From the NCBI RefSeq assembly GCF_036365525.1, contig NC_090374.1, positions 13,619,168-13,683,167 of the forward strand: DNA of 64,000 nt. Reading direction: 5' to 3'. The translations under genes and the position numbers were made by a program. Within the stretch, counting starts at the first letter, position 1; every line of letters starts with the position of its first letter. Below the pieces are notes generated by a model. That model made no database searches. It was given only the letters and a program-made list of their open reading frames with translations, and was not told the DNA's origin. Positions 935-47,878 of this stretch are shown in pieces. This stretch comes from Heterodontus francisci (lineage: Eukaryota).

Positions 935-970
935 AGTCTTCTGAAGCACTGATTGTGAATCTCTTGCCAC
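935..970 (-). CDS. Exon 8: short cytoplasmic exon; gene likely continues beyond base 1
   Basis: Acceptor cttcttgttttggttaaag|, consensus donor |gtgagt, 36 nt, phase 1-1. Encodes GGKRFTISASED. Confidence 0.55.
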
Positions 971-1063
971 CTTTAACCAAAACAAGAAGTTCTGTTAGTT
1001 GGAAGATGAAATCTGAATATAAAATAAAAAACAGCTCTAAACCATTAAGGTGCAGCTGCGGAC

Positions 1064-3814
1064 ATTAGAACATTAGAACATTACAGCGCAGTACAGGCCC
1101 TTCGGCCCTCGATGTTGCGCCGACCTGTGAAATCATCTGACCTACACTATTCCATTTTCATCCATATGTCTATCCAATGACCACTTAAATGCCCTTAAAG
1201 TTGGCGAGTCTACTACTGTTGCAGGCAGGGCGTTCCACGCCCCTACTACTCTCTGAGTAAAGAAACTACCTCTAACATCTGTCCTATATCTATCACCCCT
1301 CAACTTAAAGCTATGTCCCCTCGTGTTTGCCATCACCATCCGAGGAAAAAGACTCTCACTATCTACCCGATCTAACCCTCTGATTATCTTATATGTCTCT
1401 ATTAAGTCACCTCTCCTCCTCCTTCTCTCCAACGAAAACAACCTCAAGTCCCTCAGCCTTTCCTCGCAAGACCTTCCCTCCATACCAGGCAACATCCTAG
1501 TAAATCTCCTCTGCACCCTTTCCAAAGGTTCCACATCCTTCCTATAATGCGGTGACCAGAACTGCACGCAATACTCCAGGTGCGGCCTCACCAGAGTTTT
1601 GTACAGCTGCAGCATGATCTCGTGGCTCCGAAACTCGATCCCCCTACTAATAAAAGCTAACACACCATATGCCTTCTTAACAACCTGGGTAGCAACTTTC
1701 AGGGATTTATGTACCTGGATACCAAGATCTCTCTGCTCATCTACACTACCAAGAATCTTCCCATTAGCCCAGTACTCTGCATTCCTGTTACTCCTTCCAA
1801 AGTGAATCACCTCACACTTTTCCGCATTAAACTCCATTTGCCATCTCTCAGCCCAGCTCTGCAGCCTATCTATGTCCCTCTGTACCCTACAACATCCTTC
1901 GGCACTATCCACAACTCCACCGACCTTCGTGTCATCCGCAAATTTACTAACCCACCCTTCTACACCCTCATCCAGGTCATTTATAAAAATGACAAACAGC
2001 AGTGGCCCCAAAACAGATCCTTGCAGTACACCACAAGTAACTAAACTCCAGGATGAACATTTGCCATCAACTACCACCCTCTGTCTTCTTTCAGCTAGCC
2101 AATTTCTGATCCAAAGCTCTAAATCACCTTCAACCCCATACTTCTGTATTTTCTGCAATAGCCTACCATGGGGAACCTTATCAAACGCCTTACTGAAATC
2201 CATATACACCACATCCACTGCTTTACCCTCATCCACCTGTTTGGTCACCTTCTTGAAAAACTCAATAAGGTTTGTGAGGCACGACCTACCCTTCACAAAA
2301 CCGTGCTGACTATCGCTAATGAACTTATTCTTTTCAAGATGATTATAAATCCTATCTCTTATAACCTTTTCCAACATTTTACCCACAACCGAAGTAAGGC
2401 TCACAGGTCTATAATTACCAGGGCTGTCTCTACTCCCCTCCTTGAACAAGGGGACAACATTTGCTATCCTCCAGTCTTCCGGCACTATTCCTGTCGACAA
2501 TGACGACATGAAGATCAAGGACAAAGGCTCTGCAATCTCCTCCCTGGCTTCCCAGAGAATCCTAGGATAAATCCCATCTGGCCCAGGAGACTTATCTATT
2601 TTCACACTTTCCAAAATTGCTAACACCTCCTCCTTGTGAACCTCAATCTCATCTATCCTAGTGGTCTGAATCTCAGTATTCTCCTCGACAATATTTTCCT
2701 TCTCTACTGTAAATACTGACGAAAAATATTCATTTAACGCTTCCCCTATCTCCTCTGATTCCACACACAACTTCCCACTACTATCCTTGATTGGCCCTAA
2801 TCTAACTCTAGTCATTCTTTTATTCCTGATATACCTATAGAAAGCCTTAGGGTTTTCCTTGTTCCTATCCGCCAATGACTTCTCTTGTCCTCTCCTTGCT
2901 CTTCTTAGCTCTCCCTTTGGATCCTTCCTGGCTAGCTTGTAACTCTCAAGTGCCCTAACTGAGCCTTCACGTCTCATCCTAACATCAGCCTTCTTCTTCC
3001 TCTTGACAAACGCTTCAACCTCTTTAGTAAACCACGGCTCCCTCGCTCGACAACTTCCTCCCTGCCTCACAGGTACATACTTATCAAGGACACGCAGTAG
3101 CTGCTCCTTGAATAAGCTCCACATTTCGATTGTGCCCATCCCCTGCAGTTTCCTTCCCCATCCTACGCATCCTAAATCTTGCCTAATCGCATCATAATTT
3201 CCTTTCCCCCAGCTATAATTTTTGCCCTGCGGTATATACCTGTCCCTGCCCATCGCTAAGGTAAACCTAACCGAATTGTGATCACTATCACCAAAGTGCT
3301 CACCTACATCTAAATCTAACACCTGGCCAGGTTCATTACCCAGTACCAAATCCAATGTGGCATCGCCCCTGTTTGGCCTGTCTATATACTGTGTCAGAAA
3401 ACCCTCCTGCACACACTGGACAAAAACTGATCCATCTAAAGTACTCGAACTATAGTATTTCCAGTCAAAATTTGGAAAGTTAAAGTCCCCCATAACAACT
3501 ACCCTGTTACTCTCGCTCCTGTCGAGAATCATCTTCGCTATCCTTTCCTCTACATCTCTGGAACTATTCAGAGGTCTACAGAAAACTCCCAACAGGGTGA
3601 CCTCTCCTCTCCTGTTTCTAACCTCGGCCCATACTACCTCAGTAGACGAGTCCTCAAACGTCCTTTCTGCCGCTGTTATACTCTCCTTGATTAACAATGC
3701 CACACCCCCCCCTCTTTTACCATCTTCTCTGTTCTTACTGAAACATCTAAATCCCGGAACCTGCAACATCCATTCCTGCCCCTGCTCTACCCATGTCTCC
3801 GAAATGGCCACAAC
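1064..3814 (-). mobile_element. Young 5'-truncated CR1 LINE (copy A), uninterrupted partial EN plus RT frame
   Basis: ORF 1142-3832 has APE motifs (GDFN, SDH) and RT motifs (QGSVLGP, FADD); 3' tail (CTAATGTT)n. Near-identical to the copies at 19451-23768 and 32778-35514. Confidence 0.97.
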
Positions 3815-3856
3815 CTGTTCGGTTGGTGTCAATCTCAGCGTAGGTGCAGGAATTGT
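3815..3856 (-). CDS. Exon 7: tyrosine-motif exon (ITIM-like CTYAEI)
   Basis: Begins at the first AG after the pyrimidine tract tttcactcctgtttgtctt (an AAG acceptor); 42 nt, phase 1-1. Encodes DNSCTYAEIDTNRT. Its GT donor coincides with the 5' end of a CR1 insertion. Confidence 0.65.
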
Positions 3857-3919
3857 CTTGTGTTGTAAGACAAACAGGAGTGAAATAGTGTTATTCGTCC
3901 GACATATTTGTCCTTAGGT

Positions 3920-4035
3920 GTCAGCCGTGCCTCGATGAATGACACACTCGCCTCAGAGTCTGAAGGTTGTTGGTTCAAATCCACACTCGGGAGACCTGAA
4001 CACAAAATCTAGGCTGATGCTTCAGTAAAGTACAT
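3920..4035 (+). mobile_element. 5' fragment of SacSINE1-like DeuSINE
   Basis: tRNA-like head gtcagccgtg...ggttcaaatcc, homologous to the start of 16257-16675. Confidence 0.6.
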
Positions 4036-4037
4036 AG

Positions 4038-4680
4038 GGGGCAGTAGTGTAGTGGCAATGTTACTGGACTCATCCAGGGGATTGGACTAATGCTCGGGAG
4101 ATGAGTTCAAATCCCAACACGGCAACTGATGGAATTTAAATTCAATTAATTAACTAAACTGGAATAAAAAGTAATGATAATCATGAAACTACTGGATTGT
4201 TATAAAGCCCATCTGGTTCATAAGCATCCTTCAGGGAAAGAAATCTGCTATCCTTACTCAGTCTGGCCTTCTTGTGACTCTAGACCCTTAACTGCCCTCT
4301 GAAATGGCCTGCAAGCCACTCAATTGTATCAAACTGCTACAGAAAAGTCAAAGAAGAATAAAGTATGAGCAAGGAAACCTCCTGCAGATTACCACCTCCC
4401 ACCCTCCCTCACCATGCTAAATGAGATAGATTCAGAGCAGATCTAGCAGCTCAAAACAGGCATCTATGAGGCGCTGTGGGTCATCAGCAGCAGGATTGTA
4501 TTCAATCACAATCTTGTAACCTCATGACCTGGCATATCCCTCACTCTACCGTTACCATCAAGTGAGGGGATCAACCCTGATTTGATCAGGAGCAGCACCA
4601 GGCATACCTGAAAATGAGATGCTAACTGGGTGAAGCGACAACACAGGACTACATGCATGCTCAAGGACATAAGCGAACGA
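4038..4680 (+). mobile_element. Decayed 5' part of the tRNA-headed LINE family
   Basis: A/B-box head followed by fragments homologous to 44570-45945. Confidence 0.65.
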
Positions 4681-5100
4681 GTCATGCTTTGCTGACAATC
4701 CAACAGCTTCACAGTCATTTACTGATACCAGCTTTTTCAATTCCAGATTTCTTTATGAAATGATTTCAAGTTCTCAAACTGCCATGGTGGAATTTAAACT
4801 TCTGATCTAACCTGCTGTATTAATCCAAGCGTCTAGATTAGAAGCAGTAATAAATACAGGTCACTGTGACCCATCTGTAATATGTCCTTTTTAATGATAT
4901 AAAACTTTATGTTATCTATAAAAAGGTCTAAGCACATTTAGGCCACTTTGATGTGTTTCTGCAAAACAAAAGCACGTTTATCCCCACCGGCTGCAATGTA
5001 GCCACGGTGACCCTTTTAAAGGGCATGACATTTGATCGGCTCACGTCTTCGAGTTTTGGGAAAAACTCTCCTACAGAATCTGTACAGACAGAATCTTTGC

Positions 5101-5803
5101 GGGGAATTTTATGCTCTCCCCATGGGCGACTTTGGAGGCAGGGAGAGCATTAATCGGGCGGGATGGTGGCAGTGGGGCCCCCGCCACCTTCCCACCTCCA
5201 TCAAATTTAGTCCGGGGCGGGGGCAACTGGAATTAGCCCAGTGGGCGTGGGGTGGGTGAGGAGGGGGGGCACTGGGGGCGGGCCTATCACCGCACATGGA
5301 GCATGCCAAGCAAACTTGTGTGGGTTGCCTGCTGGCTCTGGGGTGGGAGTGTCCCTCATTAAAGGACAATGAGTGCTTGATCGAGAGAGCGAGAATTGGA
5401 AAGGGGGGGGGGGGGGGGGTGCCCGCTGAGAACCACCCCCTGCCCTGACTGTCGATCCCTTACACACCCTTCCCTGTGACCCCCCCAACCCGCGAAACCC
5501 CTCACGCTGTGACGTACCTGTGGCCTGGGTCCAGTGCCTCCGGTGAGTTCAGTGCCGGCAGCTGCCACAGCCTCTGTGGTGGTGCTGCTCAGTTAAACAG
5601 CTGCCAGCCTCTGACTGGCTAACAGCTCTCAGCAGGCAGGACTTCCGCCACCGGGTTCCTTCATCCTGGGGACGGCCCGCCGCTGTCTACTTGAGTGCCT
5701 AACTGGCACGTAATATGGCAGGACTTCCCCAGAGGAGGCAACGCAGGGCTCTCGCTGGGGCTTTAACTGGTGGCTGAGACCCCTGTGACCCAGATAAAAT
5801 CCC
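5101..5803. mobile_element. GC-rich MITE-like element
   Basis: Inverted termini ggggaattttat ... ataaaatccc, internal G/C runs, no coding signature. Confidence 0.55.
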
Positions 5804-6647
5804 AGCCTTCGATTTATTCTGCAGGTGGTCACTTCAGGTAAAGGTTTCAACAAACCTTTTCAAGAGGAATTAGACAACTGCTTCAAAGTGTGTAATTAAA
5901 GGGTATGGGAAATGAATAGGAGAGTCGGATAGACCGAGTGAGTCATTGAAGGGTGTGGGGAGTGAACAGAAAAGTGGGATTAGACTGGATGGGATACCAA
6001 AGGTTATGGTTGTGGAGCAGTAGAGAGTGCAATTACACTAGATAGGATATTGAAGAGTCTGGGCAGTGACAGGATGGTGGGAGTAGAATGCATGGGATAT
6101 CAAGAGGAATGAGTAAATATTCTGGAATATTAATTAGTGCCCTGAATACCTTCTGTCTCCACCCCTCCCCCCGCCCCTTCATTCGGCAGTGAGTTTTATC
6201 AGTTCTGTTAACTCTTTCAGCACAATGTGGTTTTGAATATTTCTCTCTGGTTGTGGCTCGTTCACCCCCTCCCTCCCTCAGGTACATCTACAGTCCCACT
6301 TTCAACTTCCTCTGCAAAAACTGAGGTAAATCAAAGTGTAGCAGGCGGGCGACTCCAAGAATGGTGTTTATAAACCTGTAGACTGTAGCAGGAAGGGAAA
6401 ACTGAGGGAGGAGTTGTACAGTTTACAGAGAAAGAATAAGTGAGAGTAGGAGATGGTTCTGCGGAGTGAGCAGGAGATGGTGTGATGAACCTTGGTTAGA
6501 TGCTGCTTTCCCCCTCCCAGCACAGCTATTGGGAGTCTTTTGGATGACTGAAGATGAGGAGAGAGTTTCAGCCAGTAATTCAACCTGAGGATTCAGGTAA
6601 TGTGAAATGGTTATTGTCCAAAAAATAATCTAGAGGCAGCGATTGAG

Positions 6648-6829
6648 GGGAGGATTTTCACCTTCACGGCCTGGGCAATTGTCGAGAGAGGATCACCCGC
6701 CCTTTATAGAACAAACCTGATTTACACTCAATTATTTTCAATAGTATGAAATTCGGACAGGGTCTATAAAGGGTCATCAATCTGTCCCATCAGTTTATCA
6801 CTCAGATAATGAAGGTGAGAATCTGCCCC
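6648..6829. mobile_element. Short palindromic MITE-like element
   Basis: Inverted termini gggaggattttcaccttca ... tgaaggtgagaatctgccc. Confidence 0.55.
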
Positions 6830-6931
6830 TGAATATCTGTCCAGTATTTTCTATTTGTAGATATTCTGTAAACTCTCTCTGCTAAACTGTCTGAATGGAC
6901 TTTGATCTGTTAACTGGAGTGTAGACGGTAC

Positions 6932-6993
6932 CTGGTGCAGACTGCTGGTGGGTCTGATCGGTCCCGGCAATGCTGGATGAATCTGGATCCTTC
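6932..6993 (-). CDS. Exon 6: cytoplasmic exon (extends to stop at 6882 if the donor at 6931 is not used)
   Basis: Acceptor ggttttttttcag|, phase 2. Encodes KDPDSSSIAGTDQTHQQSAP, then either the donor CAG|gtaccg (phase 1) or read-through GTVYTPVNRSKSIQTV*. Confidence 0.78.
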
Positions 6994-7724
6994 CTGAAAA
7001 AAAACCAGCGACAGAAATATTCAGAGAAAGCTAATGGAATAATTGCAGGTGACAGTAAGGAACATCCTGTGTACACATCATCTTCCTGTTCATGTTATAC
7101 AGAGAACAGATTTCTGAGAGTGAGTAACACAGTTAATCGATCGAACCCTGCTGGAAATTGCAGATGCTGGGATGTGGACACAATCAGACTTAGTGCAGGT
7201 GAATAGATCACCACTGCTCACAGTCTCAGCTTGGCACCAGAGTGTGACTGGTATCCAAGGAACCCAGGGCATAGTCAGCAGCTGCAACACTGGGAGGGCT
7301 GCAGAAACTAGAAAAAAAATCAAGGTAACAAATGATTCCAGGCAGCTTTGATGCACCTTCCAGTAACTGGTTCTAGGGCAGTAATGGGGGGGTTATTGGA
7401 GATAAGAGATAAATTTCTGCAGCGGCTTTTCAAAGTCGTCTGCCGTAACTTTGGTGGGAGAGTTGCTGAAACCCTAGAAAATGGAGGACGATCGGGTGAC
7501 TCCCTCCCACCCAGTGGAAATTCAGCTGTTTGAAGGGGAAGGGAGAAAATAACAATATTCAAAAATACTATAAAATGACACACTTCCATATTATACTCAA
7601 ACATTCACCGCAACTGATAACAATTCAATCAAGGAAAGTCTTTCCCTCCAGCAGGCATCCACTACAACTCAGTGTCGAAAGTGATAAAAATGAGCAAGAA
7701 CCTCATTTTTACACTAAAATAAAA

Positions 7725-7915
7725 GACTTCATTTATATATTGCCTTACACGACCATCGGACATCTCAAAGTGCTTTACAGCCAATGAAATACTTTTTGAA
7801 GTGTAGTCACTGTTGTCATGCAGCAAACACAGCAGCCAGTGCACGCACAGCACCTCCCACAAACAGCAATATGTCAATCACCAGATAATCTGTCTTTGTG
7901 AAGTTGATTGAGGGT
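7725..7915 (-). mobile_element. 3' fragment of SacSINE1-like SINE
   Basis: Reverse complement matches the 3' half of 16257-16675. Confidence 0.6.
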
Positions 7916-8213
7916 GAATTAAAGGTTAATTTGGGGAAGGAAGCTCACAGGTGAATCTGGAGTCAGAGATTTACAAGCATCCTGGCAATTGGGAGCTTTT
8001 GCTCAGTAACGATTAGCCTGTGATTCATCTCAGAGCCTTTTCAGATCACTTTCCGCACAGCAAGTGCCTGAACAGCTGCTTTGAAAGGACAATCCGTGTT
8101 CACAGTTCATCACCATCAGGCTGCACTCTTATCTGTGAGCAAAAGATGTTCAATTCAACTCTGGACCAGGGAACTTAAGCTACCCTGCATGTATTAATAG
8201 ACAATCATCCTAC

Positions 8214-8253
8214 CTTTTTGTACATCTGATGCACCCTATTAGCCATGAACATC
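8214..8253 (-). CDS. Exon 5: Cys-rich juxtamembrane cytoplasmic exon
   Basis: Acceptor catttttatctctttag|, donor AAAG|gtagga, 40 nt, phase 1-2. Encodes GCSWLIGCIRCTKR and supplies exactly the phase change needed to join the TM exon to exon 6. Confidence 0.8.
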
Positions 8254-8899
8254 CTAAAGAGATAAAAATGATGAGTAAATATTTAGTTGATTAACTGAAA
8301 TCCTTATCTGGAGCATTAGAAAATGAAAGATAAAAAAGTTAATCAAAGCCACACCCCATCTACACTCTACCCCATCATGGACTCTACCCACACATTTAAT
8401 CCCCTCCCACAGCCCATGTTCACTGATTGGTCCATATCATTCCATGTGCCATGAGTGAATGTGAAGAATGTAGCCAATTAGAATTTTATACAATGGCGTA
8501 CACGTGAAGCACACACTAAATCCTGCACACTACCTTTAACATGTTGATCACATTATATTGACAAATGTATTACATAAACTCCACTATTGGAAGGGTATCA
8601 GGCCAAACCAACCCTTTTCATCAATACATACATATTGCACAATTGGATAGGTCTGGGGTTTTATTATATGATCCTTAGATTCTTTTTCTCAAGACCACCC
8701 AACATAGTCCAGTCCAATATCAATTATTGACCAAACCAGATTGCCAACAGCAGGAATCCCAACACCGAGTGAAGAGTAACAAAACACTTTCTGCCACACA
8801 AACTGTTCCACCGCCAGTTCTCTCTGTCTTTGTTCTTTTGCATTGCCCTTGCCCACTGCCCTTTCTCTGATTTCTTAAAATGTTTGTTCATTTCAGAAG

Positions 8900-13276: not shown

Positions 13277-13384
13277 CTCCTTTCTTCCTGAAGATGATGA
13301 AAATGATGATGAGGATGAAGAGAATGAGCAGCAAAATCAGCAGTAGAAGGACCAGTAGAATGGTGCTGGAGGCAGGCGGCTTCT
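13277..13384 (-). CDS. Exon 4: transmembrane exon, no charged residue
   Basis: Acceptor cttgctgttttacag|, donor GGAG|gtgggt, 108 nt, phase 1-1. Encodes EKPPASSTILLVLLLLILLLILFILIIIFIIFRKKG. This frame is not shown in the ORF track. Confidence 0.9.
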
Positions 13385-15065
13385 CTGTAAAACAGCAAGA
13401 ACACCATTGATAAACAACATCTTAAACCGAGGATGTGTTCACCCTTGAGTCATTCCCCAGCTTGGTTCAGTTGGTGGTGTCAGAAAGCCAGAGGTTCAAG
13501 CCCCATTCATAATTTGAGCACCTAATTCACACTGAACAGCCAATACAGTAATGAAGTGTAGAGCTACATCATCAGCAGTGCTGTCTTTCAGATGAGACTT
13601 AAAACTAAGCTTCCGACTGCCTGATCAGGTAGATGCCAAAGATCCCATGACAGGCACTTTTTGAAGGAGAGCAGGGAATTCTGCTGGTGTCCTGCTAAGG
13701 TTCCCACTAAGCCATGTGAGTGTGTGGCTGCACAGCAATCCAGAACATACCGCACATTGAAATCAGCAGGCCACGCACAATGAAGAAAATTTAGAGGGAA
13801 CATTGGTCCTGGACAACCAACAGAAAATAGCTAAAATAAAAGCAAAATACTGTGGATGCGGGAAATCTGAAATAAAAACAGTAAGTGCTGGCAGGTCACA
13901 GATCTGAAACGTTAACTCTGTTTCTCTCTCCACAGATGCTGCCAGACATGCCGTGTATTTCCAGCTCTTTCCGTTTTTATTACACATATTGGCTGCTACA
14001 TTTGCTTACATAACAAAAGTTACTGCACTTCAGTAAGGGGAAGGGGAAGTTTCTGGTCCTGAGAAGTCTGTTCATAAACCCTGCCCTGAAGTGAAGTTGT
14101 GATCTATCTGCAGCTCTCGGCCTCTCTCTTCTTCCACCTCACCTGCCTCTATTGCTTTCTGCAAGATGAATGTTTCTTGGCCCTGTGGATCTGTCATGTA
14201 GAATCATACAATCTCACAGTACAGAAGGCAGCCATGCTTTCACGGAGCTATCCAATTAGTCCTACTTCTCTGCCCTTTCCCCATAGCCCTGCAGTTTCCT
14301 CCCCTCCGAGTATTCATCCAATTGCCTTGTCAAAGTTACTGAAGAATTTGTTCCACTTTCAGACAATACATTCCAGATCATAACAGTACATCAAGGAAGA
14401 CAGCTGTTTAATTATGTGTGACACCGAATATAAGATTAGATAGATATTCTAAATGACCCCACAGAGTAGTTCCCGGGTCCTGCGCAGACTCACCTGGACT
14501 CAGATGGGAAGCAGTAAGGGTTGCTTTTGGCTCCAGCTACCCCCGGGTTGAATAAAAAAGAATTGGCAATGGTTATGGATTTCTCTGAGGAGAGCTGGCA
14601 TGGACTTGATGGGCCGAATGGCCTCCTTCTGGGCTCTAAATGACTCTACAGTTCTCCCTCCTTAGTCTTTTCACTCCCTGTCGGTAATCCATGTGTGAAT
14701 GCTGAGCTAGGACAGGATCCAACTTGGCTGTGATGCCTCCCACAGTCAGACAGCCACTTGGGTAAATGTACCAGTACCTATGGAACCATTCCCGATGAAG
14801 GAGTCACACATTCTTTTTAAATCAAGAGGGACATCTTATCCTGTTGCACCTTCCAGTTAGAGATGACCTAAATGTCAGTGTAAATTTGGGTCCTTTGGAC
14901 ACTGACACACGTAACATTCAGTTCAATGGCTTTCAATACTGAATACCAAAATGTACCTAAAAGGATCAGCACATGCAAATTACTGTAAATACAATAAACA
15001 GCAAAACTGTTAGACCCTCACTGCACAACCTCGATACACTGGAGAATGTGGGAATGGTTTCTTAC

Positions 15066-15416
15066 CATGTACAACCTGCAGCTGTGTCTCAGTCTGGATC
15101 AGATATTGATAATTGTCCAATGATGTGTATTCCACCAGACACAGGTAAGTGTGATTGTCATTCACACTCAGCTGGTTTATCCTGGTTGAGGCGTTTCCCT
15201 CCTTTGGATTCCCGATGAGCTCGTACCGATTTCCACCATTTGCAGTTGTCCAAGATCCATTTGATTGGGCTCTGAATGTGACTATGTGTTGGTAGGGCTC
15301 CTTCCTCATCCATGTAACAGTGGACAGGGTGCGGTAACTCCTGGGTGTGAACATACAGGGCAATGTAACTGAAGCTCCCTCGGTCCCAGTCACCACTGAG
15401 ACATTTCCACTAGCAG
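15066..15416 (-). CDS. Exon 3: Ig V-set domain 2 (Siglec-15/NKp30/PILR-like, Arg replaced by Leu)
   Basis: Acceptor tgtcctttcctcag|, donor CATG|gtaag, 351 nt, phase 1-1. Motifs SVTLPC, TVTW, RYELIGN and DNHTYLCLVEY; four N-glycosylation sequons (NVS, NGS, NAS, NHT). Confidence 0.92.
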
Positions 15417-16256
15417 CTGAGGAAAGGACAGACATCAGAATGGATCATATGAACATCAGAAATTGGAGCAGGAATAGGCCATTCAGCCCCTCAAGCCTGC
15501 TCCACCATTTAATAAGATCATGGCTGATCTGATTATGGCCTTAACTCCACTTTTCTGCCAGCTCCCAGAACCCTTGACCTCCTCAGTGTGCTCAGATCAG
15601 TGTGCAGAATTTTTAGATTAAATTTGTTTTGTATTTTTCGACTTTACAATAGAATTAATTTCTTAAAAACTCCACTCTCATATCTCAGCAGGTCTGTCCC
15701 AGACAGGCTGTTACATTCTCCTACAGTACCCACCCTGATCATTTTAAACATTTTCTTTCATTCATGGGATGGGCATCGCTGGCTATGACAGCATTTATTG
15801 CCCATCCCTAATTGCCCTTGAGAAAGTGGTGGTGTGGCACCTTCTTGAACGGCTGCAGTCCATGTGGGGTATGTACACCCATAAGTAACTTACAGGTTAG
15901 AAAGTCCACCTACTCGAATTCATTGATCCAGAGCCCCACACCCTTCCCGCATTGCTGAATGCAATTGTTCCTTAAATTATTTCAAGGATTTCACTCCCTC
16001 CATCACTCTGTCCAGAAATCCCTTTGCAAGTGTTGACCACTCTTTGTGTAAAGGGGAACCTCCTGACATCAGTCTTCACTTGACAGTTCAGTACTTTCAA
16101 CCCATGACCATTGCTACTCACACAGTTTGATTTAAAGGAGTATTCCAGATTAATTTGGGTTGTGGGGAAATCTGCCGCTCTTCTCTGCACCACCTCCAGT
16201 GCTTGAATGTCTCTCCTCTCTCAATGCGCAGCACTTAAGATGCAGCCTGATTGCAT

Positions 16257-23768: not shown

Positions 23769-23769
23769 A

Positions 23770-31691: not shown

Positions 31692-32084
31692 CTTCCACTC
31701 TCAGACTCGTTAGTTTCTGTGTTTGAAATTGTCCAACAGTGAGCTCCACACGACACTGATAAGGACCACTGTCCGCCCGGATCAGCCGCTCCATCATTAT
31801 TGAGACATCTTTGTTACTGAAGTTCCCCACGAATCTGAATCGATTCCCGCCGTCCTGTTGTTTCACATCCTCACACAGCTCACTCTGTGAATGGCCCGGA
31901 CCAGAATATGTACACTTAAAAATAACATTGTAATCCCATGAATCGCGGTTGTACCATGTCACAGAGCCGGTGACCGTCTGATCAGTGTGTGGGTGGGTGA
32001 AAGTACACGGCAAGACAGCGGACCCTCCTTCCTCAACACTCACATCATCCGCAGCGCTCATTGTCCAACCATTCTCAGAAAACT
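31692..32084 (-). CDS. Exon 2: Ig V-set domain 1, Siglec-15-like, with essential Arg
   Basis: Acceptor (ct)n-ccacag|, donor GAAG|gtgagg, 393 nt, phase 1-1. Encodes WTMSAADDVSVEEGGSAVLPCTFTHPH...VTW...IFKC..SELC...RFRFVGN...DSGPYQCRVEL, which matches the Siglec-15 V-domain motifs AVLPCTFTHPH, FRC..SELC, RFRLLGN and YFCRVEF. Confidence 0.93.
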
Positions 32085-37350: not shown

Positions 37351-40300
37351 GCAATAAGATTGATAAACTAGTAGAACAAATACAGTTAAATGGATTCGAT
37401 CAAATCACCATTGCAGAGACATGTTTACAAGGTTGCGAAATAAATACTCCAGGATATACAACATTTTGAAAAGACAGACAGAATAGAAAAAGAGGAGGAG
37501 TAGCCCTGATAGTAAAGGATGACACAAGGACAGTAGAGAGAAAAGATCGTGTCTCAGATGATCGGGAAGTAGAATCAGTATGGGTGGAGATTAGGAATAG
37601 CAAAGGTCAGAAAATACTCATGGGAGTAGTTCATAGCTCCCTAACAGTGGTTATACCATTAACAAAGCTTTAAGCAAGAAATTATTGGAGCTTGTAACAA
37701 AGACAGTGTAATAATTGTGGGGGACTTTAATTTTCACATAGACTGGACCAATCAAATTGGCAAACATGGGCTGCCATAGTATGTTTCGTGACAGTTTCCT
37801 GGAACAACACTAGGGATAAAGCTGTTTTAGATCCAGTATTATGCAATCAGGCAGGGTTAGTTAGTAATCTCATAATAAAAGATCAGCTGGGAAAAATGAT
37901 CATAATACAACTGAATTCCATATTAAGTATGAAAGTGGCATATTCCAGTCCCATACACAAATCTTAAACTTAAAGCCAATTACTTAAACATGAGGGGGAG
38001 AGCTGCGTCGATTGCTTGGGTAAATAGACTAAAAGGTGTGGCGGTAAATAAACTGTGGGAAACATTAAAAGAAATAAAACAAAATATTCAAAAAACAAAA
38101 ACTTAGCAAGAAAGATTCTTTTGTGGCTTACAAAGGAAGTTAAGGATAGTCCCTTACATTTCTCCAGTACTTTTTCTCTGTTGATATCAATTACCTTAAT
38201 TTCCTCTCTCTTGTTAGTCCCTAGATTACCCTCAATTTCTGACATGTAACTTAAGTCTTATACTGTGAAGATAAACACAAATTATTTGTTCAATGTCTCT
38301 GCCATTTCCCATGATAATTTCGCATGTCTCTGCCTCTAAGGGACCAACATTTACTTTAGCTACTCGCTTCTTTCTTATATACTTGTAAAAGCTCTTGCAA
38401 TCTGTTTTTATACTCCCATATTCTATTATTTTTCCTTTTAATCAACATTTTGGTAGCCCTTTGTTGGTTTCTAAAACAGTACCAATCTTCAGGCTTACTA
38501 CTATTCTTTGCAACATTATAAGCCTCTTCTGTTAATCTGTTCTGATGAAAGGTCACAAACCTGAAAAGTTAACTCTGCTTCTCTCTCCACAGATGCTGCC
38601 AGACTTGCTGAGTATTTTCAGCACTTTCTGTTTTTATTTCACATTCCCACCTAGTTTTGTGTCATCAGCAAACTTGGAAATATTACATTTAGTCCCCACA
38701 TCCAAAACACTTATAAAGATGGTGAATAGCTGGGACCCAAGCAGTGATCCTTGTGGTATCACACTAGTCACAGCCTGCCAACCTGAGATTAACTTGTTTA
38801 TTCCTACTCTCTGTTTTCTGTCTGTTAACCAATTCGCAATCTATAGCAGTATATTACCCCCAATCCCATGTGTTTTTATTTTGTTTATTAACCTCCTGTG
38901 TGGGACCTTATCAAAAGCCTTCTCAAAATCCTAATTCACCACATCCACTGGTTCCCCCATTCTGCTAGTTACATCCTCAAAAAACCCCAACAGGTTTGTC
39001 AAACATAATTTTCCTTTCATAAATCCATATTGATGCTGGCCAATCCTCCCAGTGTCCAGTTATCACATCCTTTGTAATAGATTCTAGCATTTTCCCTACT
39101 ACTGATGTCAGGCTAACAGGTCTGTAGCTCTCTGTTTTCTCTCTCCCTCCTACATTTGCTACTTTTCAATCTTCAGGAACCATTCCAGAATCTATAGACT
39201 TTTGGAAAATGATCACCAATGCATCCACTATCTCTACAGCCACCTCTTTCAACACTCTGGGATATAGATCATTGGGTCTAGGGGATTTATCAACTTTCAG
39301 TCCCATTCATTTCTCCAGTATTACTTTCTTACTTATACTAATTTCTTTCAGTACCTCATTCTTGCTAGTCCCTTGGTTCTTTAGTATTTCTGGGAGGTTT
39401 TTTTTTTATCTTCCTCCGTGAAGGCAGACACAAAATATTTGTTTAGTTTCTTTGCCATTTCCTTACTCCCCATTATAAATTCTCCTGTCTTGGCCTGTAA
39501 TAGGCCCATATTTGTCTTTGCTAATCTTTTTACATACCTATAAAGCTTTTACAGTCATTTTTTATGTTTCTCGCTAGTTTACTTTCATATTCTATTTTCT
39601 CTTTCTTTATCTGTTTCTTAGTCCTCCTTTGCTGAATTCTAAAATGTTCCCAATCCTCAGGTTTACTACTTTTTTGGGAAATTTTATAAGCCTCTTCCTT
39701 TGATTTAATACAATCTTTAACTTCTCTTGTTAGCCATGGTTGGATCAACTTTCCTGTTGGGTTTTTGGGCCGCAAAGGAATGTAAATTTGTTGTAAACCA
39801 TGCATTAATTCTTTAAATGCTACCCATTGCCCATCCATTGACATACCTTTTAATGTAGTTCCCCAAACTATGACAGCCAACTTGCCTCTCAACCCTTTGC
39901 AGTTTCCTTTACATTTAAGACCCTAGTTTCAGATTGAACTATATCACTTTCAAGCTTAAAGTAAAATTCTAACATATTATGATCACTCTTCCCTATAGTC
40001 TCCTTTACAACGGGATTGTTAATTAGCCTTTTCTCATTGCACAATACCTGATGTAAAATAGCCCATTCTCTAGTTGATTCCTCAACATATTGTTTTAGAA
40101 AACCATCTCGTATACATTCCAGGAATTCGTTCTCCACAGCATTAATGCTAATTAGGTTTACCCAGTCTATATGTAGATTGAATCTCCTCATGATTACTGT
40201 ATTACCCTTGTTACCTCTAATTTCCTGATTTATACTGTGTTGTACATTACCGCTGCTGTTTGGTGGCTTATAAACAATTCCTACCAATGTTTGCTGTCCC

Positions 40301-40400
40301 TTGCTGTTTCTTAGCTCCACCCAAATTGATTCTACATCTTGACCCTTCAATTTAAGATCCTCTCTCATTAACGGATTGATCAAATCCTCTCACTAATGTA
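37351..40400. mobile_element. Old CR1 fragments (plus strand 35515-35644 and 37351-38150; minus strand 38150-40400)
   Basis: Degenerate EN/RT motifs (VESIWVELRNSKG, SDHN). Confidence 0.75.
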
Positions 40401-40644
40401 TTGATCGATGGGCCTTATGGTCTACTCCTGCTCCTGTTTCTTATGTTGTTATGTTCTCAGTTGTTGACTATATTCAAGACAGAGATCAATAGATTTTTGT
40501 ATACTAAAGGAATTGAGGGAGGAAAGGTGGATTTAAGGTTGAAGATTAGGCACGATCATGTTGAATGATGGAGCAGGCTCGAAGGGACCAATGGCCTACT
40601 CCAGCTCCTATTTCTCATGTTCTTATGACACATAGCATTATTTT

Positions 40645-41215
40645 TGCAAGAGCAAAATACTACAGATGCTGGAAATCTGAAATTAAACAGAAAATGCTGG
40701 ACATATTCAGTGGGTCAGGCAGCATCTGTTCAGGTCGATGACCTTTGATCAGAACTGGAAAAAGTTAGAGATGGAACAGCCTTTAACCAAATACAAAGGC
40801 GGGGGAAAGGGGGATGGAGTGGAAAGAACAAAAGGGAAGATCTATATTAGGGTGGAAGGCAGGAAAGATGAAATGACAAAAGGGTTTATAGTACAAAGCA
40901 AAAGGAAGTGGTAATGGGGGAAGTAAAGAAATAAAAGACGTGGCCAGAGGAGCGACTGGCAGAATGTGGCAGAATGATAAACAGCTGCCGTCCAGAAAAA
41001 ACAAAACTAAGAAAGAAAAAGGAAACAAAATGGAGGCAGAGATTACGCTCTGAAATTGTTGAACTCAATATCTGGAAGGCCGTAAAGTGCCTAATCAAAA
41101 GGTGCGGTGCTGTGCTCAAGCTTAGGTTGAGCTTCAATGCAATACTGTAGGAGGCCGAGAACAGAAAGGTCAGAGTAGGAGCAAAGTGGAGAATTAAAAT
41201 GACAGATGAAAGGAA
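40645..41215. mobile_element. Probable Penelope-like element fragment
   Basis: Begins with the dispersed module aaagcaaaatactgcagatgctggaaatctgaaat, also present at ~13835-13980, 16780-16915, 38540-38640, 54778-54915 and 60650-60785. Family assignment is from memory only. Confidence 0.45.
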
Positions 41216-41679
41216 GTAATTTTGTTTTGGGTCAGAGTCCAGTGTATCCTTATTTTGTTTCTCAGAAACTTGTTTTGTTTCTAAGAAACTTCATTTGTTT
41301 GAAATTAGTTCTTGTGTGTTGATGTGGACATTAAAAAAGAGAAGACCTGACTTCAAGCATCTCAGTTTTGTGCTTCATTCCAAAAAATTTTCACCTCATC
41401 AACTCTTGATTCTATAAAGCTGAGGGCCATCCATTGCTCGAGTACTGGGAAGGCTCTTCCAATATCTCTCTCTTCCACGGTCTGTCTCAGGAGTCTCGAA
41501 CAGAATACTGGAAAAAGCTTGTGATCTGATCTCTGACCTCTCGGATCAAATCTGTATCTTCATCTCAACCTTTCCTCTCTCAGTTTCTTTCTATCTCTCA
41601 CAACAATACTACTGAAGTCAATATTCCTCTGCAATTCCTCTCCTTAGTACACCTATAGTCATGCAAAGCTCTCTGCTGC

Positions 41680-42275
41680 ATGTTGACCTTTATTGCAAGC
41701 GGATTGGACCACAAGAATAAAGAAGTCTTGTTAAAATTATGCAGGGTTTTGGTGAGACCACATCTGGAGTACTGTGTGCAGTTTTGGTCTCCACATTTAA
41801 GAAAGGATATACTTGCATTGGAGGCGATACAGCAAAGGTTCACTAGCTTGGTCCCTGGGGTGAGAGGGTTGTCCTGTGATGAGAGGCTGATTAAATTGGG
41901 CCTATATTCTCTGGAGTTTAGAAGAATGAGAGGCAATCTCATTGAAGCATACAAGATTCTGAAGGGGCTGGATAAGGTAGATGCTGAGAGATTGTTTCTG
42001 CTGGTCCAGGAATCTAAAACATGAAAGGCAAAGTCTCAGGGTAAGGGGCTGATCATTTAGAACCCTGATAAGGAGAAATTATTTCAAACGGTAACGCAGG
42101 GGGTTGTGGATGCTTTGTCGTTGAGTATATTTAAGGCTGGGATAGACAGAATTGGGGTCTCTCAGGCAATCAAGGGATAGGGGAGTGGGTGGTATAGCCC
42201 AAAGATCAGCCAATGGCGGAGCAGGCTCGACCAGCCATTTGGTCTACTCACGCTCCTATTTGTTGTGTTCTTGTA
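41680..42275 (+). mobile_element. Old CR1 3' fragment
   Basis: Encodes LVRPHLEYCVQFWSPHLRKD. Confidence 0.82.
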
Positions 42276-42754
42276 TTGAAGTAAAGGCTGATTGCATTGT
42301 CTGCTCCTCTAATTCATTCTTTTACAGGCATCACACAACTGTATCGCCTCTCTCAGTTTTCCCTTCTTCAACCTACAAGCTACCAAAACCATACCTCATG
42401 ATGACTTCTTAATTTGTTTATCCTCTATCCGGTCTTTTGGTGTCCTCTAGTTTGAGGCCTTCATTTAAATTTCTCAGTGTTAAACATTACACAGTCAAAT
42501 AGAGCTTGAACTCTGATGTCACTTAACTGACCCCACCACCACCATAATAATGTTTCCCCACAACATCCCAGTAATCTGTCCTCCTTTACACCCCAATAAC
42601 TGATGATGCCCAACCTAAAGGCACTGGAGAAGATGCAAAACAGGTTTTCAAGGATGATACCAGGACTGAGAGGTTCGCTAACAACCACCAACAGATACTA
42701 TGGCTGCTCTAAACCCACTCATCAAACCTGTGAAAAAACGCAGGGAGTTTTAAA

Positions 42755-45700
42755 AATTTATTCATGTGATGTGGGAGTCGCTGGCCAGGCCAGCATTTAT
42801 TGCCCATTCCTAATTTCCCTTGAAAAGGTGGTGGTGAGCCGCCTTCTTGAACTGCTGCAGTTCATGTGGAGTGTAGGTACACCCACAGTGCTGTTAGAAA
42901 GATGATATAGTTCCAAGTCAGGATGGTGTGTGGCTTGAAGGGGAACTTGCAGGTGGTGGTGTTCGCATTCATCTGCTGCCCTTGTCCTTCCAGGTGGTAG
43001 AGGTCGTGGGTTTGGAAGGTGCTGTCTAAGCAGCCTTGGTGCGTTGCAGCAGTGCATCTTTTAGATGGTACACACTGCTGCCACTGTGCGTCAGTGGTGG
43101 AGGCAGTGAATGTTGAAGGTGGTGGATGGGGTGCCAATCAAGCGGGCTGCTTTGCCCCTGATCGTGTCAAGCTTCTTGAGTGTTGTTGGAGCTGCAGCCA
43201 TCCAGGCAAGTGGAGAGTATTCCATCACACTCCTGACTTATGCCCTGTAGATGGTGAACAGGCTTTGGGGTGTCGGGAGGTGGGCTACTTTCCACAGAAT
43301 TCCCAGCCTCTGACCTGCTCTTGTAGCCATAGCATTTATGTGGCTGGTCCAGTTCAGTTTCTGGTCAATGGTAACCCCCAGGATGTTAATAGTGGGGGTT
43401 TCAACAATGGTAATGCCAATGAAAATCAAGGGGAGATGATTAGATTCTCTCTTGTTGGAGATGGTCATTGCCTGGCACGTGTGCGGCACGAATGTTATTT
43501 GTCACTTATTAGCCCAAGCCTGGATGTTGTCCAGGTTTTGCTGCATCTGGACACGGGCTGCTTCAGTATCTGAGGAGTCGCAAATGGTGCTGAACATTGT
43601 GTAATCATTAGCAAACATACCCACTTCTGACCTTATGATGGAGGGAGCAGCTGAAGATGGTTGGGTCCAGGACACTACCCTGAGGAACTCCTGCAGTTAT
43701 GTCCTGGGACTGAGATAATTGACCTCCAACAACCACAACCATCTTCATTTGTGCTAGGTATGACTCCAACCAGCAAAGAGTTTTCCCCTGATTCACATTG
43801 ACTTCAGTTTTGCTCGGACTCCTTGATACCATACTCAGTCAAATGCTGCCGTGATGTCAAGTGCAATCACTCTCACCTCGCCTCTGGAGTTCAGCTCTTT
43901 TGTCCATGTTTGGACTAAGTTTGTAATGAGGTCAGGAGCAGAGTTGTCCTGGCGGAACCCAATCTGAGTGTCAGTAAGCAGGTTATTGCTGAGCAAGTGC
44001 CGCTTGATAGCACTGTCAACGACCCCTTCCATCACATTGCTGATGATTGAGAGTAGACTGATAGGGTAGCAATTGGTCGGGTTGGAATTGTCCTGCTTTT
44101 TGTGGACAGGATATACCTGGGAAATTTTCCACATTGCCTGGTAGATGCCAGTGTTGTAGCTGTACTGGAACAGCTTGTCTGGGGGGGTGCGGCTAGTTCT
44201 GGAGCACAAGTCTTCAGTACTATTGCCGGAATGTTGTCAGGGTCCAAAGCCTTTCAAGTATCCAGTGCCTTCAGCCGTTTCTTGATATCACGTGGAGAGA
44301 ATTGGATTGGCTGAAGACTGGCATCTGTGATGATGGGGACCTAAGGAGGAGGCCGAGATGGATCATCAACTTGGCACTTCTGACTGAAGATGGATGCAAA
44401 TATTTCAGCCTTGTCTTTCGTACTGATGTGTTGGGCTCCCCCATCATTGAGGATGGGGATATTTGTGGAGACTCCCGCTCCTGTTAGTTGTTTAATTGTC
44501 CACCACCATTCAGGACTCGATGTGGCATGACTGCAGAGCTTAGATCTGATCTGTTGCTTGTGTGATTGCTTTGCCCTGTCTATCACATGCCGCTTCTGCT
44601 GTTTGGCATGCAAGTAGTCCTGTGTTGTAGCTTCACCATGCAAATACCTAATTTTTAGGTATGCCTGGTGCTGCTCCTGGCATGCTCTCCTGCACTCTTC
44701 ATTGAACCAGAGTCGGTCCCCCAGCTTGAAGGTAATGATACAGTGGAGGATATGCCAGGCCATGAGATTGCAGATTGTGGTTGAATACAATTCTGCAGCT
44801 GCTGATGGCCCACAGCGCCTCATGGATGCCCAGTTTTGAGTTGCTAGATCTGTTCGAGATCTATCCCATTTAGCACAGTGATAGTGCCACACAACACGAT
44901 GCAGGGTATCCTCAATGTGAAGTTGGGACTTCATCTCCACAAGGACTGTGTTGTGGTCACTCCTACCAATACTGTCATTGACAGGTGAGGATGAGGTCAG
45001 GTAGGTTTCTCCCTCACCACCTGCTGCAAACCCAGTCTAGCATCTATGTCATTTAGGACTCAGTCAGCATGGTGCTACTGAGCCACTCTTGGTGATGAAC
45101 ATTGAAGTTCCCCACCCAGAGTACATTCTGTGCCCTTGCTACCCTCAGAGCTTCTTTGAATTGGTGTTTAACATGGAGAAGCACTGATTCATCAGCTGAG
45201 GATTGTGAGGGGGTGGGGGGTGGATAGTGGTGGTGTTGCAGGAGCGATAGGTGGTAATCAGCAGGAAGTTTCCTTTCCCAGGTTTGACCTGATACCATGA
45301 GACTTTATGGGGTCTGGAGTCCATGTTAAGAACACCCAGGGCAGCTCCCTCCTGACTATGTCATTGTGTCGCCAACTCTGGTGCCACCTCAGGGATGGTG
45401 ATGGTGGTGTCTGGGACATTGTAAGGTATGATTCCGTGAGTATGACTATATCATGCTGTTGCTTGACTAGTCTGTGGGACAGCTCTCCCAATGTTGGCAC
45501 AAGCCCCAAAATGTTAATAAGGAGGACTTTTCAGGGTCGTCAGGGCTGGGTTTGCTGTTGTCGTTTCTGGTGCCTGGGTCGATGCCAGGTGGTCTGTCTG
45601 GTTTCATTCCTTCTCTTAGGCTTCATAGCAGTTAGATACAACTGACTGGCTTGCTAGGTGATTTCGGAGGGTATTTAAGAGTCAACCACATTGCTGTGGG

Positions 45701-45945
45701 TTTGGAGTTACCTGTAGGCCAGACCAGACCTGGTAAGGATAGCAGATTTTCTTCCCTAAATGACATTAGTGAATCAGATGGGTTTTTACAACAATCAACA
45801 ATGGCTGCATGGTCCCCATTAGACTAGCTTTTAATTCCAGATTTATTAATTGAATTCAAATTTCACCATCTGCCATGGTGGGATTTGAACCCATATCCCC
45901 AGAGCTTTGTTCAGTGGCAATACCACTACGCCACCGCCTCCCCTA
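42755..45945 (-). mobile_element. Near full-length degenerate CR1/L2-group LINE with a tRNA-like (Pol III) 5' head and no evident ORF1
   Basis: Head ggggaggcggtggcgtagtgg...ggttcaaatcc at ~45870-45943; EN (IVILTESYL, GNFNVHH) and RT (ALDITAAFD, PQGSVL) fragments; 3' tail gggcaataaatgctggcc. Confidence 0.85.
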
Positions 45946-46764
45946 AGTTCATGGATTACCAGGCAGACCTCTCTGTGAAGATGTTGCGTAAATATCTCAA
46001 ACCTGAGGGATTGGCAACAGAGTTTGCAGGAGGTTTAAAGGTCAGGTTTTATTACCAGACATTGGTTATGGCAGAAACAAGACCAAACACATGCTGTCCT
46101 CGGGATTCAAGAAACTCTTAATCCCCAATATTAAGGAGCTGGAATGATGAACAAGAATTACTGTGCTGAGATTTCTCACAATATCCCCTCCAGAAAGTGC
46201 AGTGTGATTGTGGAGACGGCAGCCCAGTTCGCAATGAAGATCACCAATCCCAAAGACAGGTTACACAGCAGAGGGTATGAATAGCGTCTTGGCAAAGCTA
46301 TAAAGTTCTTTACTAAAAGTTTATAATACAGAAATAAGGAAAGGCTATAATATCAGGAAAGACTGAACAGGCTGGTGCTCTTCCCTCGAGGAAAGAGAAG
46401 GCTGAAGGATGACCTGATAGATATCTTTAAAATTATGAAGTGGTGCAATAGGGTAGACCTACAGAAGATGTGAAGGAACCCAAAATCACAGACCATAAAT
46501 ATAAGATCGTCACCAACAAATGACTAAGGAATTCAGGAGAAGCATTTTACTCAGAGAGTGGTTAGAATGTGGAACTTGGAGTGATTGAGGTGAACAGCAT
46601 CGAAGTATTTAAGGGGAAGCTAAATAAACACATGAGGGAGGAAGGAATAGAAGGAAATGCTGATAGGGTGAGATGAAGATGGGTGGAATGAGGCTCGTGT
46701 GGAGCATAAACCCTGACAAAGACCAGTTGGGCCAAATGGCCTGTTTCTGTGCTGTAAATTCTAT

Positions 46765-47492
46765 GGGCCATAATTTGCTGTAGCAGTGCACCTAACAGTG
46801 TCTCCCATTAGTTAGACTTGCCCATGCACGTTTAGGCTTTTACCTTTTTCGTAGAAGGTTGCTGAAAATGTGAGCTGATAACATCGCTGATAATAAGGAA
46901 AACCGGACATCTAGAGCCTGAGTGAAGGCAAACAACTGTGTGTCTCCTTAATTAATGATACAAAGTATTGTAAAAATAACAGTGCAAGGACTGAGAAGAA
47001 AGTGTGAGTGAATTCAATGCTAAATCAGGTACAAAAAGAGAAATAAAGAGAGGGAAAGAAAGATTGGAATAAGAGAGAGAGAAAGGGACAGAAAGGAAAA
47101 GTAACAAAAATATTGACATTGTTTAAATCACCAGAAATTAAAACCTGAAGGAATGAGACTTCACACTTGTAATATTTAGATTTCAGTGCCAGAGTGGTTG
47201 ACTGACAGTAACTAACTCATCACCTTGATAAAAAGAGTACTTTGACTGAAATGGACAAGACAACTTTATGTGCTGAATTTTTAGTTTGTATCTACCACGT
47301 AAGCACATCAACTTCACATCGTTCAATACATCTCTATGGTGAGCCAGACAGCAGGATGCTGTTTTCACGAAGCAGCAACTTTGGATTTCTGCATTTAACT
47401 GTGCCTTTCATCTGAAGTTGCTGTACCATTTGTGCATAAATAGCAGTGAGTGCCAATAGCTTCACCATTATTTTGACAGTAAGTTATTGCCC
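46765..47492. mobile_element. MITE-like element
   Basis: Inverted termini gggccataatttgctgt ... acagtaagttattgccc. Confidence 0.5.
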
Positions 47493-47817
47493 AATGTGCC
47501 CTTAACCTGGCAGTGACTGCAGCATTCTGTTGCTCCTCTCACACCCTGAAAGTTCCTATTAGCTTCTCTGTGCTTCTTCCTACTACGAGCTCTGCTTTGG
47601 CAGCTGTAGTTAAGCAATCTTATCTTGCTTTGAATTTACTTAACAAGCAAAACATTTTCTCCTGTTAAGAAACAATGGGGAAGGAAGGACAGGGTACAAA
47701 TTCTGGACAGCACCAGGGTTTGGAAAGTAAATGCAGACAAGCAGATAAGGTAAAGAAAAGGAGGCAATTGGGTGACATAACAATGAATTTGAACAGTTAT
47801 TATTAGAAAGCACCTAC

Positions 47818-47878
47818 TGGAACCCCACACTGAGACCGACAGCAGAACTGTGGAAAGCCAAACGTAGAGAGAACTCAT
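47818..47878 (-). CDS. Exon 1 (signal peptide) of Siglec-15-like two-V-domain receptor
   Basis: GCG-ATG start; encodes MSSLYVWLSTVLLSVSVWGS (hydrophobic leader). It ends in the phase-1 donor TCCA|gtaggt, matching the phase-1 acceptor of the first V exon. Confidence 0.8.

Follow-up and report, generated by a model that had tools for sequence, protein, structure and literature searches.

The 64-kb window of Heterodontus francisci DNA described here (the window being the whole stretch that was analysed, to whose positions all coordinates refer; it is without N and has approximately 46% G+C) carries on its minus strand an intact, transcribed gene for a type-I membrane receptor. The product consists of a signal peptide, two V-set immunoglobulin (Ig) domains (V1 and V2), an uncharged transmembrane (TM) segment and a tail of approximately 80 residues, and its predicted identity, as judged from the sequence, is that of a Siglec-15-related inhibitory receptor. 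An earlier examination of the letters of this DNA (the sequence-only reading) had proposed eight phase-compatible exons coding for leader, V, V, TM and tail. All of the motifs it cited are located on the minus strand, and its gene model is borne out in the DNA, where the eight exons can be read with AG/GT borders and compatible phases throughout; exons 7 and 8 are absent from the RefSeq product.

A protein search with the V1 frame recovered this RefSeq product, here called P0001 (XP_067885265.1/XP_067885266.1; Heterodontus francisci, ‘uncharacterized protein’, 381 aa), and tblastn shows that exons 1 to 6 of the window encode it residue for residue. Exon 1, the leader (47818..47878, this and all further exons on the minus strand), begins with the ATG at 47878, encodes the signal peptide MSSLYVWLSTVLLSVSVWGS, is a 100% match to P0001 residues 1-20 and ends in a phase-1 donor, A/GTAGGT. 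Exon 2 (31692..32084) encodes V1, a Siglec-15-type V-set domain, as judged from its sequence, a Pfam match, a PDB match and the letters of RNA contigs, and exon 3 (15066..15416) encodes the second V-set domain, V2, as judged from its sequence, Pfam, several PDB matches and an RNA contig. Exon 4 (13277..13384; a 100% match to P0001 residues 269-305) provides a short stalk and an uncharged, Leu/Ile-rich TM helix ending in RKKG. It is followed by exon 5 (8214..8253), which matches P0001 and encodes the Cys-rich juxtamembrane piece (G)CSWLIGCIRCTK (GCSWLIGCIRCTK), and by exon 6 (6932..6993), which encodes (R)KDPDSSSIAGTDQTHQQSAP, a 100% match to P0001 residues 318-338, and carries the donor CAG/GTACCG.

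Two optional mini-exons for the tail lie further along, both recognized from the sequence and from tblastn searches with the paralogues P0004 and P0005. Exon 7 (3815..3862, or from 3856) encodes (A)QDNSCTYAEIDTNRT, which includes CTYAEI; the acceptor AG expected from the protein boundary of the paralogues reads AA in this copy, and an in-frame AG is present 6 nt on, giving the start at 3856. Exon 8 (935..970) encodes GGKRFTISASED and has the donor T/GTGAGT. Both are skipped in the RefSeq product of this gene, and their counterparts are used by the paralogues P0004, P0005 and P0196. The last 43 residues of P0001 (AQPDSCTYASIMTDSSKKVQGSKKPTVADSEENVTYAAVVTTR), including CTYASI and VTYAAV, are not encoded in the window, and therefore the gene extends past coordinate 1.

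Direct evidence for splicing comes from four runs (X1 to X4) of one sample, whose RNA nature is a tool’s guess, yet spliced joints are present in them. The four runs contain 15-20% of the words of 13277-15416, which is approximately the exonic share. Contigs of X1 and X3 carry a joint of 15066 to 13384, as expected for splicing from V2 to TM (GT..AG on the minus strand), and, in X2, X3 and X4, contigs whose match around V2 stops at 15418 go on for another 24 letters; these letters have a single place in the window, 31694-31717, immediately beside the final two bases of the V1 exon. Given these contig joints and the unique 24 letters, both splices are seen directly. Thus, of the junctions implied by the sequence-only reading, V1 to V2 is confirmed in three runs and V2 to TM in two, with the proviso that paralogues are the source of some of the contigs. 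In X1, a contig of 593 letters matches V2 with zero mismatches. The high-depth contigs of X2 to X4, however, show as many as six differences from the window at the end of V2 (15105-15122), which indicates that some abundant contigs are derived from paralogues. The differences at these positions match a TLRSNYQH variant found in paralogues with a Lys in the TM segment, and such paralogues seem to be abundant in the sample.

The V1 exon passes the Pfam V-set model with an E value of 5e-14, and among PDB entries it matches human Siglec-15 best (7zoz_A, E 3e-16). Matches to a TIM-1 homologue and CD33 come next, with E values of 4e-6 to 1.6e-5, so that Siglec-15 leads the next solved relative by ten orders of magnitude. 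V1 has the canonical Cys pair (LPC...YQC), an extra pair (FKC...SELC) and an F-strand Arg in CRVEL, and the aligned shark residues W26, C47, C78, C91, C131 and R132 correspond to human W44, C64, C95, C104, C142 and R143. In Siglec-15, C64 and C142 form the inter-sheet bond, C95 and C104 form an extra bond described as unique, and R143 makes a salt bridge to sialic acid, with W44, Y87, Y154 and E155 providing further contacts (PMC10264397). The FKC and SELC segments of V1 align to FRC and SELC of 7zoz_A, and hence a C'-C'' disulfide is predicted by alignment; the first Cys of this extra pair is kept in 43 of 44 family members. Likewise, CRVEL aligns to CRVEF of the human protein, and the F-strand Arg is present in 35 of the 44. 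The position of human Y87 is Trp in the shark domain. The claim that the first domain is Siglec-15-like is well served by this agreement of the Trp, both Cys pairs and the F-strand Arg.

V2 also passes the Pfam V-set model (E 2.5e-16), and its PDB matches are the V domain of Siglec-15 (1e-9), TIM-2 (9e-9) and pIgR. The position of the Arg is occupied by Leu (YLCLVEY), and across the family this residue is Leu in 38 and Gln in 6 of 44 members. The second domain is therefore, as had been proposed, a V domain with Leu in place of the Arg. AlphaFold2 run on the single sequence gave a mean predicted local distance difference test score (pLDDT) of 39 and was unusable, whereas the same program with a 53-sequence alignment predicts two confident beta-sandwich domains (pLDDT approximately 90-97), a TM helix at residues 275-302 and a disordered tail. 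When both domains together were submitted to Foldseek, the matches were generic tandem-V structures (JAML, pIgR, VCBP3 and a single-chain variable fragment, scFv) with root-mean-square deviations above 10 Å because of the domain orientation, and this whole-ectodomain result has no bearing on kinship.

The TM segment of this gene, LVLLLLILLLILFILIIIFII, contains no charged residue. The tail of P0001 carries CTYASI and, 28 residues on at the C-terminus, VTYAAV, which is a canonical immunoreceptor tyrosine-based inhibitory motif (ITIM; consensus [S/I/V/L]xYxx[I/V/L]). Approximately 30 family members, from many species, combine CTYAS[IL] with VTYAAV or VIYAAV. An uncharged TM segment and an inhibitory-type tail, both anticipated from the DNA, are thus present, the latter in the RefSeq protein. 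Similar tails occur in two salamander V-V proteins named ‘Siglec-12-like’ (P0041 of Pleurodeles and P0048 of Ambystoma), which end in CTYADI...[D/E]VTYAVV with a spacing like that of the shark tail. The similarity between the shark and salamander tails exceeds that of all 300 shuffles (z approximately 7), although the test is lenient, as an Ig segment in P0101 gives a plainly spurious match that still reaches z 5.7. The two tails possibly represent an ancient inhibitory module.

The sequence-only reading had also guessed that this gene could be one member of a paired-receptor family, and this has proved correct. Both P0002 and P0003, paralogues from the same 212-Mb record, share 88-89% identity with this gene over V1 and 92-96% over V2, and their C-termini consist of a TM segment with a Lys (IPLGVKLLALIV; ILCIPLGVKLLALIVMWIILL) and a tail of 9-23 residues. 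Given that same-chromosome paralogues combine nearly identical ectodomains with a Lys TM segment and short tails, we conclude that this is a paired family. The TM segment of bird Siglec-15, VPLGIKVLILLV, is like those of P0002 and P0003 (PLGxK), and a TM Lys is likewise found in mole, frog and teleost Siglec-15. This Lys couples Siglec-15 to DAP12/DAP10 (PMC7226832).

Well over 100 proteins, from more than 20 species of sharks, rays and skates, were recovered when V1, V2 and a skate member were used as queries. Their names are all automatic, and include uncharacterized, Siglec-15/10/12, pIgR-like, JAML, HAVCR1-like and sialoadhesin-like. The earlier attribution to a shark lineage was therefore too narrow, as the family is found in rays and skates, and V-V Siglec-15-like proteins are found in chimaera, lungfish, salamanders and gar. 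C-terminal modules were counted in a first sample of 80 family proteins. Approximately 18 of these have a Lys TM segment (mostly of the PLGxK type) and a short tail, and approximately 35 have an uncharged TM segment and a tail of approximately 100 residues, most of which contain CTYAS[I/L] and V[T/I]YAAV. The ectodomains are built as V1 alone, V1-V2, V1-V2-V1-V2 or V1-V2-V2-V2. Relatives with long V arrays include lungfish P0022 (Protopterus), with seven V1-like domains, P0023 (Narcine) and the shark proteins P0190-P0194, the arrays in sharks being V1-V2-V1-V2 or V1-V2-V2-V2, and some of these may be fused gene models.

When 75 V domains were placed in a maximum-likelihood tree with TIM-like domains as the root, those of activating and inhibitory members clustered by species in Heterodontus and Scyliorhinus, and in a tree of 62 family V1 domains from many species the activating or inhibitory state switches at least 11 times. 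On this sequence evidence, clustering by species combined with repeated switches of state corresponds to the pattern left by gene conversion or exon exchange, as has been reported for the paired Siglecs Siglec-5/14 and Siglec-11/16 (PMC4042635, PMC5701461). The V1 F-strand Arg is present in 28 of 29 ITIM-type members versus 16 of 33 Lys-TM members, with at least eight separate losses (P0001-P0293). Among phylogenetically independent pairs, approximately three support an association between Arg loss and TM type, none oppose it and five are ties (median p 0.25). Retention of the Arg in ITIM-type members would fit self-glycan sensing by an inhibitory arm, and it is only a trend after shared descent is taken into account.

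The same 75-domain tree bears on the origin of V2. Here, the V2 domains of elasmobranchs group together (support 100/99), and their sister group is the second V domain of V-V-C2 proteins from chimaera, sevengill shark and manta (98/84). These are the Siglec-15/Siglec-12-like proteins of Callorhinchus (XP_042192165.1), Heptranchias (XP_067838218.1) and Mobula (XP_062903801.1). V1 and V2 of the window gene are only approximately 30% identical to each other, and this value, together with the grouping of V2 with the second V of the V-V-C2 proteins, indicates that V2 is an old and distinct domain type rather than a recent copy of V1. The proposal that the ectodomain was built from duplicated Siglec-15-type V exons thus finds no support. 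In the V-V-C2 proteins, the C2 domain has been kept and bears the AEGEPP...W signature seen in tetrapod Siglec-15, and their C-termini comprise a Lys TM segment (chimaera), an uncharged TM segment (chimaera) and a multi-ITIM tail (sevengill shark). In the window gene, no C2 remnant was found in the 1.7-kb intron between V2 and TM or elsewhere in the window, and the window likewise yielded neither a Lys-TM exon nor the terminal ITIM exon when it was searched for them. The simplest history is that the C2 domain was probably lost from a V-V-C2 ancestor, and this would be the novelty of the gene.

The placement of V1 is less sharply defined. V1 (100/99) stands in a polytomy with Siglec-15-like domains from tetrapods, lungfish, teleosts, gar and salamander. 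When all Siglec-15-like domains are constrained to form one group, the cost is 4.4 log-likelihood units (approximately unbiased (AU) test, p 0.37), and constraining V1 to group with V1 of the V-V-C2 proteins costs 1.75 units (AU p 0.44). Orthology of V1 to Siglec-15 is compatible with these data.

Taken as a whole, the explanation that we favour is that this receptor anatomy serves a sialoglycan-sensing inhibitory function within an elasmobranch expansion of Siglec-15-related genes, to which we assign a probability of approximately 0.6. By analogy with known Siglecs, V1 would bind sialylated self glycans through R132, and V2 may act as a spacer or as a second surface. As for other ITIM receptors, engagement of ligand would lead to phosphorylation of the tail Tyr residues and to the recruitment of SHP-1/SHP-2, and cell activation would be damped as a result. 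Paralogues with a Lys TM segment would be expected to signal in the opposite direction through a DAP12-type adaptor. The family would then represent an elasmobranch expansion of the Siglec-15-related lineage that fills the role of the mammalian CD33-related Siglecs.

Several observations weigh against this explanation. In the tree, V1 is not grouped with Siglec-15 orthologues, and it is weakly pulled towards the classical Siglecs, whose branches are long (86/89, not starred); as for the Siglec-15-like placements, the AU tests do no more than fail to reject them. The RYE of the G strand in human Siglec-15 (K-Y-E in bird and frog) is replaced in V1 by GQFQTQK, which leaves an aromatic Phe alone. 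Zebrafish Siglec-15 bound the tested glycans poorly (PMC7226832). With regard to the tail, CTYASI is not a canonical ITIM, and the exon for the canonical ITIM is known from the database protein alone and not from the DNA of the window. The RNA contigs are partly derived from paralogues, such that contig depth is not a measure of the expression of this copy. Finally, we infer both sialic-acid binding and signalling by this receptor from its sequence and from analogy.

Some of these points lend themselves to a different interpretation, in which the gene encodes a paired Ig receptor of the same anatomy whose ligand is a protein or a non-sialylated molecule (as for JAML, TIM, CD300 or the co-recognition by PILR), and in which the Arg is a relic or serves another contact. 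The lack of conservation of the G-strand Y-E contacts of Siglec-15 (PMC10264397) and the weak glycan binding of the zebrafish protein (PMC7226832) both favour this possibility, as do the presence of TIM-2 and pIgR among the nearest solved relatives of V2, the return of tandem-V proteins with non-sialic ligands (JAML, pIgR and VCBP3) by the whole-ectodomain fold search, and the absence of the Arg from half of the Lys-TM members. However, near-universal retention of the Arg in the ITIM-type members, the conservation of the Trp and both disulfides, and the far closer match of V1 to Siglec-15 than to any non-Siglec are harder to accommodate. We therefore regard a non-sialic ligand as unlikely, though it is the most serious competitor to a sialoglycan-sensing receptor.

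Whether this particular copy is functional also deserves consideration, because the window is rich in reverse-transcriptase frames of long interspersed nuclear elements (LINEs). A young, 5'-truncated CR1 LINE occupies 1040..3814 on the minus strand, is 97.7% and 99% identical to two other copies in the window, and has an open reading frame of the reverse-transcriptase type at 1145-3913. Its first base, 3814, doubles as the G in the GT donor for the exon at 3862-3815 (CTYAEI), and so the element itself supplies the weak GTTGTG donor. Just upstream of exon 1, the region 48000-53700 is GC-rich (0.575 versus approximately 0.45) and contains long reverse-transcriptase frames of the LINE type.

In an alternative view, the gene is a decaying member of a birth-and-death cluster, annotated and perhaps transcribed, but with a tail damaged by CR1 and no working receptor as its product. 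The exact position of CR1 at the donor of the CTYAEI exon, the AA that replaces the ancestral acceptor AG of that exon, the omission by RefSeq of two tail exons that paralogues use, the abundance of mobile elements at the locus and the derivation of many V2 contigs from paralogues all speak for decay. Nevertheless, the six core exons are open and have good splice sites, one contig matches V2 without a mismatch, and the skipping of phase-1 mini-exons keeps the frame, such that the RefSeq product still ends in CTYASI...VTYAAV. On balance, decay appears very unlikely.

Three further features of the gene were observed around its exons. Read-through of the V2 donor (15007..15065, minus strand) adds GKKPFPHSPVYRGCAVRV and then a stop, and the added segment is 71% identical to the C-terminus of the Hemiscyllium protein P0012. 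It may represent a conserved soluble V-V isoform produced by intron retention. If the donor at 6932, which the RefSeq product uses, were left unused, the frame would be extended through 6885-6931 (minus strand) with TVYTPV, which resembles an immunoreceptor tyrosine-based switch motif (ITSM), and further on with SIQTV before a stop, which resembles a PDZ ligand. The 5' leader region at 47884-47961 (minus strand) resembles an N-terminal extension of the paralogue P0003 (KHFDQLLYFGVKRHEAASEKD), and the window copy contains a stop in this region, which means that the upstream start is not usable in this copy.

The family could also be known already under another name, that of the clearnose skate's MDIRs (modular domain immune-type receptors), reported in 2006. 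MDIRs, as described by Cannon et al. in 2006, are reportedly a large multigene family of skate with one to six Ig domains and with both charged-TM and ITIM forms. They are similar to pIgR and CD300, and form a multigene family with activating and inhibitory members (PMC3031540), a description that recalls the present proteins, which are likewise modular (V1-V2-V1-V2 and V1-V2-V2-V2) and carry pIgR-like automatic names. However, the domains of MDIRs are described as CD300/TREM/pIgR-like rather than Siglec-like (PMC3031540), and no MDIR-named protein or protein of Raja eglanteria is present among the 90 shark and ray homologues of the skate member. On these names and descriptions, an identity with MDIRs appears very unlikely. 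No published description of the family was found in the literature on shark or elasmobranch Siglec-15, chondrichthyan paired Siglecs or MDIRs, and this large family of sharks and rays is apparently undescribed; the receptor is ordinary in mechanism. A survey of fish Siglecs is confined to teleosts, and states that fish lack inhibitory CD33-related Siglecs (PMC7226832).

The notion that the V-V model is an annotation artefact and that V1 and V2 are parts of two adjacent genes, which their separation by 16 kb with LINEs between might encourage, is refuted for the family and extremely unlikely for this copy. RNA-type contigs in three runs connect V1 to V2 exactly at the bases predicted for the splice, and the identical V1/V2 border is modelled in many species.

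Siglec-15 is regarded as the lone, conserved, activating Siglec and is a current target of immunotherapy. A broader scenario, which we put forward tentatively, is that jawed vertebrates ancestrally possessed a paired Siglec-15 system made of V-V-C2 receptors with either a Lys TM segment or an ITIM tail. Amniotes would have kept only the activating V-C2 form, whereas elasmobranchs would have dropped C2 and multiplied V-V into dozens of genes, activating and inhibitory, in rapid exchange with one another. The tail CTYA[S/D]I...VTYA[A/V]V, shared by sharks and the salamander V-V proteins, would then be a relic of the ancestral inhibitory arm. If this scenario is true, the elasmobranch expansion would be a functional counterpart of the mammalian CD33-related Siglecs, which are reportedly absent in teleosts (PMC7226832). 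An ITIM-bearing relative with the same lectin domain in a paired family would mean that both arms of signalling were once present in the Siglec-15 lineage, and would date paired, rapidly evolving Siglec families to well before, and outside, the mammalian CD33-related group. The receptors are also candidate self-sialoglycan checkpoints in cartilaginous fish. For structure-function work, the family supplies natural variants of the Siglec-15 binding site, in which the Arg is kept or lost and V2 stands in place of C2.

Comparison with known systems indicates where this gene is familiar and where it departs from precedent. JAML (PDB 3MJ6) is the best fold match to the whole ectodomain and is also a type-I receptor with two tandem V-set domains, but it is only 16-17% identical, is a non-lectin with a protein ligand (CAR), and is matched at the level of fold. 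MDIRs resemble the family in that they too are modular Ig receptors of elasmobranchs, encoded by many genes and divided into activating and inhibitory forms, and differ in being CD300/TREM/pIgR-like, a distinction drawn from the descriptions and names of MDIRs rather than from their sequences. Siglec-5/14 and Siglec-11/16 offer a parallel in organization, as they too include ITIM and charged-TM partners with nearly identical ectodomains that cluster by species, which either gene conversion or recent duplication would lead one to expect, and have lost the Arg repeatedly. They belong to another Siglec lineage, have V followed by C2 domains and are specific to mammals. The V-V-C2 proteins share with this gene the V1-V2 order, a V2 in the same clade, and the existence of both Lys-TM and uncharged or ITIM forms, but they retain C2 and have His rather than Leu at the Arg position of V2.

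Human Siglec-15 (7ZOZ) remains the closest reference for V1, where the Trp, the Cys pairs of the canonical and the extra C'-C'' disulfides and the Arg of the F strand are all kept. The Lys TM segment of the paralogues is common to Siglec-15 as well, and its PLGxK context is common to bird Siglec-15. In contrast, the second domain here is a V-set rather than a C2 domain, the TM segment is uncharged and is followed by an ITIM-type tail, where Siglec-15 relies on a Lys and the DAP12/DAP10 adaptor, the G-strand Y-E contacts are not retained in the shark V1, and the gene is one of a multigene family, whereas Siglec-15 is a single conserved gene. Because the gene has neither a C2 second domain nor a TM Lys, it should not be filed as Siglec-15.

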